A stretch of DNA of 51,629 nucleotides, counting the filler, from Bipalium vagum (Eukaryota): NCBI GenBank assembly GCA_037834085.1. It is 3 parts of 3 records of this genome, joined end to end, with 100 filler letters (N's around TTAATTAATTAA, not from the genome) between each part and the next. Parts side by side here need not be neighbours in the genome. Positions count along the whole stretch, not along the records: positions 1 to 16,369 come from JBBMKC010114516.1; 2 more parts are not named here. The stretch is one strand, 5' to 3'. The first letter of the stretch is position 1. Each line of letters starts with the position of its first letter. Positions 5,488-5,758 of this stretch are shown one piece after another. The notes below the pieces were generated by a model. That model made no database searches. It was not told the DNA's origin and worked only from the letters and a program-made list of their open reading frames with translations. A program made the position numbers and the translations under genes.

Positions 5488-5562
5488 TGTGAGATATATT
5501 GAAAATTAGTCGGGGGGATGTCGGGTTCGAATCCCGGTATCTCCGATTAATTTTCACTAACA
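5488..5562 (+). repeat. TRIM 5' LTR containing a hairpin (5500-5556) and Pol III B box (5524-5534)
   Basis: Sequence: tgtgagatatattgaaaattagtcggggggatgtcgggttcgaatcccggtatctccgattaattttcactaaca. Confidence 0.95.
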
Positions 5563-5580
5563 TGGCGACCACACCAGGAC
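5563..5580 (+). promoter_or_regulatory. Primer-binding site, probably for tRNA-Arg
   Basis: TGGCGACCACACCAGGAC. Its reverse complement GTCCTGGTGTGGTCG-CCA fits the 3' end of animal tRNA-Arg (..GTCCTGnnGTGGTCG-CCA, from memory). Confidence 0.8.
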
Positions 5581-5671
5581 ACCAACCAACGGACGGGGTC
5601 TCGGAAGTAAAAATGAAAAGGAAAATGAAGTAAAGGGACTCGGGGCAGTTAAGGATATGGATGTGAGGTTT

Positions 5672-5683
5672 AAAGGAGGAGGA
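5672..5683 (+). promoter_or_regulatory. Polypurine tract of the TRIM
   Basis: AAAGGAGGAGGA immediately abuts the TG of the 3' LTR. Confidence 0.9.
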
Positions 5684-5758
5684 TGTGAGATATATTGAAA
5701 ATTAGTCGGGGGGATGTCGGGTTCGAATCCCGGTATCTCCGATTAATTTTCACTAACA
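5684..5758 (+). repeat. TRIM 3' LTR, identical to the 5' LTR
   Basis: 75/75 identity with 5488-5562. Confidence 0.95.

Follow-up and report, generated by a model that had tools for sequence, protein, structure and literature searches.

The window analysed here, a stretch of 51,629 nucleotides from Bipalium vagum (NCBI GenBank assembly GCA_037834085.1; three parts of three records joined end to end), contains at positions 5488-5758 of the plus strand an element of 271 bp in total, which we refer to as the window copy. It is a complete long terminal repeat (LTR) retrotransposon, non-autonomous and of the type called terminal-repeat retrotransposon in miniature (TRIM), with two LTRs, a target-site duplication (TSD), a primer binding site (PBS) as well as a polypurine tract (PPT), and it is a member of a multi-copy family whose copies across the Bipalium vagum assembly are referred to below as the TRIM family. 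An earlier note on this DNA had described identical 75-bp TG..CA LTRs, a GAGAT TSD, an 18-nt PBS and a PPT lying flush with the LTRs, and a 121-bp non-coding interior; when the coordinates were re-read, all of these features were confirmed (Table 1). The same note had taken the insertion for a complete non-autonomous LTR element holding all the necessary cis signals, and the LTRs, TSD, PBS and PPT bear this out. In addition to TG..CA direct repeats with a short TSD, and a PBS and PPT adjoining the LTRs, the element is shorter than ~1 kb and has no coding capacity, in agreement with what defines a TRIM.

Table 1. Features of the window copy and its target site, in positions of the window.
Feature	Position	Strand	Description
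Left TSD	5483..5487	+	GAGAT, 5 bp; same as 5759-5763
5' LTR	5488..5562	+	75 bp, TG..CA; family LTR of ~114 bp shortened by a deletion
17-nt inverted repeat around module	5497..5559 (arms 5497-5513, 5543-5559)	+	88% complementary; extends the acceptor stem
tRNA-Ala-like module remnant, 5' LTR	5514..5545	+	GGGGATG acceptor 5' strand, T arm, TATCTCC acceptor 3' strand + G
B box in 5' LTR	5524-5534	+	GGTTCGAATCC, within T arm of module remnant
T4 run (four T residues), 5' LTR	5551-5554	+	Inside 3' arm of the 17-nt inverted repeat
Interior	5563..5683	+	121 bp, non-coding, purine-rich, no sense-strand T4 run
PBS	5563..5580	+	TGGCGACCACACCAGGAC, 18 nt, flush with 5' LTR; complementary to tRNA-Arg(ACG) 3' end + CCA
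PPT	5672..5683	+	AAAGGAGGAGGA, flush with 3' LTR
3' LTR	5684..5758	+	75 bp, 100% identical to 5' LTR
tRNA-like remnant, 3' LTR	5710-5741	+	
B box, 3' LTR	5720-5730	+	
T4 run, 3' LTR	5747-5750	+	
Right TSD	5759..5763	+	GAGAT

A similarity search of the source assembly (440.8 Mb in 272,664 contigs) with the window copy yielded 1,375 first-look candidates, and all 40 of the 40 that were scored matched. Nearly all matches align to query positions 35-230 and have ~40 bases more, placed between LTR positions 34 and 35, and identity to the closest other copy reaches 90% over the part that both share. Complete copies of the TRIM family measure 343-362 bp; their LTRs are ~114 bp and their interiors 129-134 bp (mostly 131 bp) long. 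Several copies show shortening of one LTR only, and in most the position of the PPT is occupied by AAAGGAGGGGGA instead of AAAGGAGGAGGA. The earlier note had proposed checking in the source assembly that each copy has its own TSD, and a perfect, private 5-bp TSD was found at 16 of the 19 complete copies. Because the same layout recurs genome-wide with its own TSD at these loci, the architecture of the window copy is not a product of chance. The same TSD, GTGAC, was seen at two separate loci (L018 and L024), and ATTAT likewise at two (L026 and L022), in a sample too small to speak of a target preference.

Whole-genome pattern counts, allowing up to two mismatches and yielding 0-3 matches with reversed-pattern controls, gave at least 2,559 LTR 5' ends (23-nt pattern), 798 LTR 3' ends of one variant (21-nt pattern), 428 interiors (23-nt pattern) and 125 LTR-PBS junctions (26-nt pattern). 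The resulting ratio of LTRs to interiors, ~6:1, is as expected if solo LTRs predominate.

The canonical LTR of this family is built around a pseudo-tRNA resembling transfer RNA for alanine (tRNA-Ala), a feature that the earlier note overlooked. A normal LTR of ~114 bp consists of a 5' part of 24-25 nt, a 72-nt pseudo-tRNA derived from tRNA-Ala that has A and B boxes, and a short 3' part that has a T4 run and ends in CA; the LTR termini read TGTGAG.. and ..CTAACA. The Rfam tRNA model RF00005 scores 49.3, 38.6, 33.4 and 31.2 bits in four canonical LTRs (gathering score 29), and ARAGORN called 16 LTRs as "tRNA-???" with a two-nucleotide anticodon (cg, gc, ca, ag or tg) in a shortened loop. The minimum free energy fold of the 72-nt module is a cloverleaf, whose acceptor stem, GGGGAUG/UAUCUCC, includes a G3:U70 pair. 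With box A defined as TRGCY..YGG and the strict box B as GGTTC, 33 of 41 LTRs have the A-box motif, 25 the strict B box and 20 both, and a run of at least four T residues lies downstream of the module, within the last 30 nt, in 39 of 41 other LTRs. The 5' half of the module equals GGGGATGTAGCTCAGTGGTAGAGC, the usual 5' half of metazoan tRNA-Ala, but for one substitution and one inserted base, and it is because of this near-identity that the module is tentatively called tRNA-Ala-derived. Exact matches to GGGGATGTAGCTCAGTGGTAGAGC occur at two places in the genome; putative genuine tRNA-Ala genes lie, for example, at C1178:106 and C251018:810. A functional tRNA-Ala gene is ruled out by the two-nucleotide anticodons in the shortened loop of the ARAGORN calls and by the abnormal length of the anticodon loop in Rfam, and in the window copy by the complete loss of the anticodon arm.

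Another 5' half of tRNA-Ala type, GGGGACGTAGCTCAGCGGTAGAGC, was met at ~230 places, often on short contigs (e.g., C3981:4663-4686 and 4906-4929), with one pair lying 243 bp apart. Apart from two loose matches, the LTR 5' part of the TRIM family is not found upstream of this repeat, which could be another family of the Helenus type discussed below, or a tRNA-Ala-derived short interspersed nuclear element (SINE) that donated the LTR module.

When aligned to a canonical LTR (L018:1428-1541), each LTR of the window copy shows a single gap of 40 bp. This gap covers the D arm, the anticodon arm and the variable region, including box A, and leaves box B in place. The remnant at 5514..5545 folds as a single hairpin, a 12-bp acceptor/T-arm minihelix of -17.8 kcal/mol with the B box in the loop region and the G3:U70 pair retained, and it receives no Rfam tRNA call, compared with 31-49 bits for canonical LTRs. 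The whole window LTR forms one long hairpin (z = -4.39), and none of 200 shuffles folds as well. A search of the whole assembly with the deletion junction (29-mer, up to two mismatches) returned only 5506-5534 and 5702-5730, the window copy's own LTRs, so the length of 271 bp belongs to a single derivative and is not a family size. Deletions of other kinds were seen in the tRNA-like part of other copies, for the most part affecting a single LTR. They include loss of the T arm between CCCGG repeats, loss of the anticodon hairpin and larger gaps, and this variety marks the structured module as a deletion hot spot.

The best explanation of these data as a whole, and one that we consider highly probable, is that the window copy is a one-off deletion derivative of an abundant, ~350-bp, tRNA-carrying TRIM family. 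Since both LTRs of a new copy derive from one reverse-transcribed U3-R-U5, a deletion shared by both is most simply understood as a deletion in the template RNA or a jump of the reverse transcriptase. It would have arisen in the template RNA, or by such a jump over the folded tRNA-like domain, in the very event that made the window copy.

The PBS is complementary to the final 15 nt of the genome's tRNA-Arg(ACG) genes followed by CCA; one of these genes, in L043, ends in GAGTCCTGGCGTGGTCG followed by a T-run. In the window copy the pairing covers 17 of 18 positions, in other copies, L018 among them, all 18. The TRIM family has the cis signals needed for reverse transcription primed by a tRNA and for 5-bp staggered integration. 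The non-coding element would depend for its copying on an autonomous LTR retrotransposon that supplies reverse transcriptase and integrase, packages tRNA-Arg and cuts with a 5-bp stagger. A pattern search with the LTR end plus the PBS showed the same AACTAACA end together with a tRNA-Arg PBS in several further LTR families of the genome, one of which resembles a ~2-kb non-coding element. Locus L052, in which the LTR and PBS of the TRIM family are joined to a different interior, was considered as a helper and rejected as a mosaic of other repeats. Open-frame matches to the BEL/Pao protease (Peptidase_A17) were found only on contigs of ~300-1,000 bp (e.g., C245937, C259103 and C2461), and their confinement to such short contigs suggests young, high-copy elements on which the assembly collapsed.

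LTR-type elements ending in CAACTAACA (L036:1440-1540, minus strand; L038:109-193) were also observed, in which the primer site runs deep into the tRNA-Arg(ACG) complement, over ~45 nt in L036 and over nearly the whole tRNA in L038. It looks as if plus-strand strong-stop synthesis had copied the primer tRNA well past the usual 18 nt in these elements.

Between the LTRs of normal copies lie the 18-nt tRNA-Arg(ACG) primer site, ~100 nt of purine-rich spacer and the PPT. The sense strand of the interiors from 19 copies contains a single run of four or more T residues vs 28 runs of four or more A residues and is 69.5% purine, and the length of the element falls in the RNA polymerase III (Pol III) range. 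Cassandra, which carries 5S sequence in its LTRs, has been reported to yield Pol III transcripts (PMC10886601). By analogy with this element, and given the sequence bias, transcription of the TRIM family by Pol III is likely; genomic RNA would be made from the internal promoter of the 5' LTR, past the first T4 run, to the T4 run of the 3' LTR.

Several observations weigh against this account of the element. Our searches found no autonomous partner, and the families with the AACTAACA end and tRNA-Arg PBS are without gag-pol or long, correctly oriented open reading frames (ORFs) in the copies examined. The T4 run in the 5' LTR stands ~10 nt 3' of the tRNA-like part, where it could halt Pol III ahead of the PBS, and box A is gone from both LTRs of the window copy. 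The loss of box A would be uninformative if the deletion arose in reverse transcription, and would argue against a strict need for Pol III if the deleted parent was the template. Finally, a deletion after insertion, followed by gene conversion between the LTRs, could also yield two identical deleted LTRs. Termination within the 5' LTR and the missing A boxes would both be expected if the tRNA-like module were a passenger, that is, a SINE relic within the LTR, with RNA supplied by RNA polymerase II (Pol II) or by read-through from a flanking gene and the boxes irrelevant to mobility; the GGGGACGTAGCTCAGCGGTAGAGC repeat, lacking the LTR 5' part, would be a possible donor SINE, and Kojima (2024) stresses that the use of Pol III by Helenus is unvalidated (PMC10886601). 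A passenger module, however, does not account for an interior in which T4 runs are strongly avoided, and on the sense strand alone, or for an element that lies wholly within the Pol III range. Nor does it account for A and B boxes kept at the frequencies given above despite ~9% divergence within the family, and a start upstream of the module would leave just the 24-25 nt LTR 5' part to hold a Pol II promoter. With the Pol III transcripts of the 5S analogue Cassandra also counting against it, we judge the passenger explanation unlikely, though it keeps a real share of the probability.

Similar weighing applies to the age of the window copy and to the origin of its two matching deletions. Zero differences over 75 bp place the LTR divergence below ~3.9% (95% level), and at the family-typical LTR divergence of ~5% such identity has a chance of ~2%, so the window copy is either younger than most copies or has been homogenised. 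Homogenisation is what would be seen in an old insertion in which the 40-bp deletion occurred in one LTR after integration and was then copied by gene conversion to the other LTR, 196 bp away. Deletions in the tRNA-like hairpins after insertion are common, usually in one LTR, and the window interior is as diverged from other copies as that of any old member (mean 91.2% and maximum 93.4% identity, with interiors ~91% alike pairwise). On the other hand, the same deletion in both LTRs was seen in 0 of 18 other complete copies, which indicates that conversion is infrequent in the TRIM family, the TSD is still perfect, and the divergence from other copies may stem from their own decay and from subfamily structure rather than from the age of the window copy; we therefore hold gene conversion to be improbable. 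Compared with it, the earlier note's picture of a distinct, ultra-small, very young and currently active TRIM family has much less in its favour, and we consider it very improbable. The identical LTRs, with their ~2% chance at typical divergence, the perfect TSD and the intact PBS and PPT would all fit such a family, but the deletion junction is found in no other place of 440 Mb, there are no sister copies, the nearest copy being 90% identical and the interiors at most 93.4% alike, the remaining copies are all 343-362 bp, and 75 identical bases do no more than bound the divergence as above. The term "ultra-small" thus holds for this copy and fails for its family, the 75-bp LTR being the outcome of a deletion unique in the assembly. 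The one-off deletion derivative that the earlier note had itself named as the contrary outcome is nearly what was found, in that the junction occurs only in the window copy. The claim of recent or current activity is not supported either, as LTR identity gives only an upper bound on divergence, the two LTRs within each of the other copies are 87.5-99.1% identical (the youngest, L048, at 99.1%), and no interior comes closer than 93.4%; the sequence lends weak support to the youth of the window copy itself. No joint skipping the element was found in the contigs of one public run, in which only the 3' junction is visibly bridged and from which rare alleles are dropped. Least credible of all, to the point of being nearly negligible, is that the window copy is not an LTR element, and instead a SINE of tRNA origin duplicated locally in tandem, or an artefact of assembly. 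Its repeat unit does have a SINE-like tRNA head and the assembly is strongly fragmented, yet the PBS lies exactly 3' of the first repeat and the PPT exactly 5' of the second, an A-tail is absent, and TG..CA ends with 5-bp TSDs recur at 16 of 19 independent loci. This LTR-PBS-interior-PPT-LTR layout, with its constant 5-bp TSD and lack of a tail, contradicts tandem duplication of a SINE. An artefact is at odds with a public-run contig spanning 5732-5884, which matches the 3' junction without difference, though this run may be the source of the assembly itself.

TRIMs with tRNA-derived sequence in their LTRs were named Helenus by Kojima (2024, Biology 13:119) and grouped with Cassandra and Ajax as TRIMp3 (PMC10886601). 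Published Helenus elements are 311-1,263 bp long; all animal Helenus are reported to have 4-bp TSDs and to be linked to Gypsy, in six animal phyla that do not include the flatworms, and the LTRs of hymenopteran, fish and molluscan Helenus were aligned to tRNA-Lys, tRNA-Val and tRNA-Lys, respectively (PMC10886601). Like Helenus, the TRIM family has two short tRNA-like LTRs with A and B boxes on either side of a tRNA-complementary PBS, a non-coding interior and a PPT, its pseudo-tRNA is unlikely to be functional, its LTRs far outnumber its interiors, and its size is near the published lower bound of 311 bp. It differs in its 5-bp TSDs, as opposed to the 4 bp of the published animal lineages (5 bp is also found in fungal and plant Helenus and in Ajax), and in a module that is tRNA-Ala-like with a G3:U70 pair, while the window copy, at 271 bp, differs further in having lost the A-box half. 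The family fits the Helenus/TRIMp3 definition, having tRNA-derived LTR sequence, conserved A and B boxes, a PBS and a PPT, and its 5-bp TSDs place it outside the published animal Helenus lineages, though within that definition. The novelty of kind suggested by the earlier note does not stand, as TRIMs with tRNA-like LTRs were already described as Helenus/TRIMp3 in 2024 (PMC10886601); the TRIM family is a new family within this described kind. Comparison of six of its motifs with the sequence file of the Helenus paper, a check limited by line wrapping, gave no match other than one unrelated 12-mer (PMC10886601), and a literal search of a library of papers for motifs of the family likewise gave none.

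Other elements share part of this design. Cassandra of plants (565-860 bp) and Ajax of nemerteans (421-434 bp) also carry a fragment of a small-RNA gene transcribed by Pol III in both LTRs of a TRIM (PMC10886601), and Ajax has 5-bp TSDs; however, theirs is a 5S type-1 promoter, in contrast to the tRNA type-2 promoter here, and there is no sequence relation. In taeniid tapeworms, ta-TRIM (Koziol et al. 2015, PMC4558846) is a flatworm TRIM whose LTRs have TG..CA ends and whose PBS complements a tRNA, and it too has a PPT and solo LTRs, but it is much larger, with LTRs of ~198 bp, an interior of ~590 bp and a nine-base tRNA-Leu PBS placed 4 nt from the LTR. The ta-TRIM paper does not mention polymerase III (PMC4558846). 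The tRNA-derived SINEs (SINE2) resemble the TRIM family in their tRNA-like head with A and B boxes, T-run-free body, short length and high copy number, and differ in having no LTRs, PBS or PPT, in their A-rich or LINE-derived tail and variable TSDs, and in being mobilised by long interspersed nuclear elements (LINEs).

The DNA on either side of the window copy was also considered. The earlier note had held that removal of the element rejoins a reading frame, but the reconstructed empty site contains only a 72-codon open stretch in DNA of 33% GC, with a best Pfam match that is not significant (E = 0.05), and a flanking gene was rejected on this basis. Judging by contig depth, the flanks seem to be repeats in their own right. 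Elsewhere in the window, whose GC content is 32.7%, an ORF resembling gag, with zinc knuckles of the CCHC type (Pfam zf-CCHC, E = 2.5e-11), lies at 9-1137 (+), cut by the contig start and followed by a 102-aa ORF without a Pfam match; it is probably the 3' remainder of the gag region of another LTR retrotransposon. N-terminal parts of Tc1/mariner-type transposases are found at 15808-16369 (+), where the sequence (HTH_Tnp_Tc3_2 match, E = 4.8e-08) is truncated at the end of the piece, and at 3602-3883 (-), with matches to HTH_23 and HTH_29. A 299-aa ORF at 7944-8843 (-) has no Pfam match, and its language-model look-alikes, PAN/Apple-domain clusters largely of mollusc and cnidarian origin (score 0.93, with recognition below the usual threshold), are uninformative; it may be an exon of a host gene or a chance ORF.

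Mitochondrial sequences were encountered in the same assembly. Three COX1 sequences, L031, L032 and L033 (C253947, C246471 and C253320), are open but for in-frame TGA and share 74-79% DNA identity, and many other COX1 fragments, which contain stops, resemble nuclear copies. This divergent set could come from a mixed sample, from heteroplasmy or from young nuclear copies. In L031, the best of the COX1 contigs, and in no other of the three, AAA stands at five universally conserved Asn positions in addition to TGA for Trp, and these two reassignments indicate genetic code 9. The gene order in L031, all on one strand, is trnF-cox1-trnE-ORF166-ORF, where ORF166 has a weak nad6 match over nearly its full length (E = 0.067) and the following ORF has a weak match to the N-terminus of nad5 (E = 0.0016). 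The Dugesia mitochondrial arrangement opens with cox1-E-nad6-nad5 (PMC12192195). A COX1 fragment search gave identities of 60-79%. The mitochondrial GC content, 33%, is equal to that of the window (32.7%). Echinoderm cox1, in contrast to the order in L031, precedes trnR-nad4L. The host is on this basis probably a flatworm and possibly triclad-like, provided that the mitochondrial contig and the window stem from one organism.

Taken jointly, these results lead us to a tentative proposal, one we regard as possible but somewhat short of an even chance, that the TRIM family is the first flatworm lineage of Helenus/TRIMp3, that its 5-bp TSDs and tRNA-Arg primer point to a non-Gypsy helper (e.g., BEL/Pao or Copia-like), that its ~1,700+ excess LTRs are dispersed pseudo-tRNA-Ala Pol III units, and that the window copy is a natural test of the need for box A in cis. 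The claim of a record-small, currently active element fails, as the small size reflects a single internal deletion. For annotation of the Bipalium vagum genome, the solo LTRs of the family would appear as pseudo-tRNA genes to tRNA finders, and annotation pipelines will mistake the LTRs, at least 2,559 in number, for genes of tRNAs or pseudo-tRNAs. If the proposal is true, a non-Gypsy helper breaks the published animal rule of 4-bp TSDs and Gypsy. The class of TRIMs with a Pol III promoter in the LTR is only a few years old and its known hosts are patchy; a high-copy family in a probable flatworm, with 5-bp TSDs and a tRNA-Arg primer, would widen this host range and suggest that more than one autonomous superfamily serves such elements in animals.

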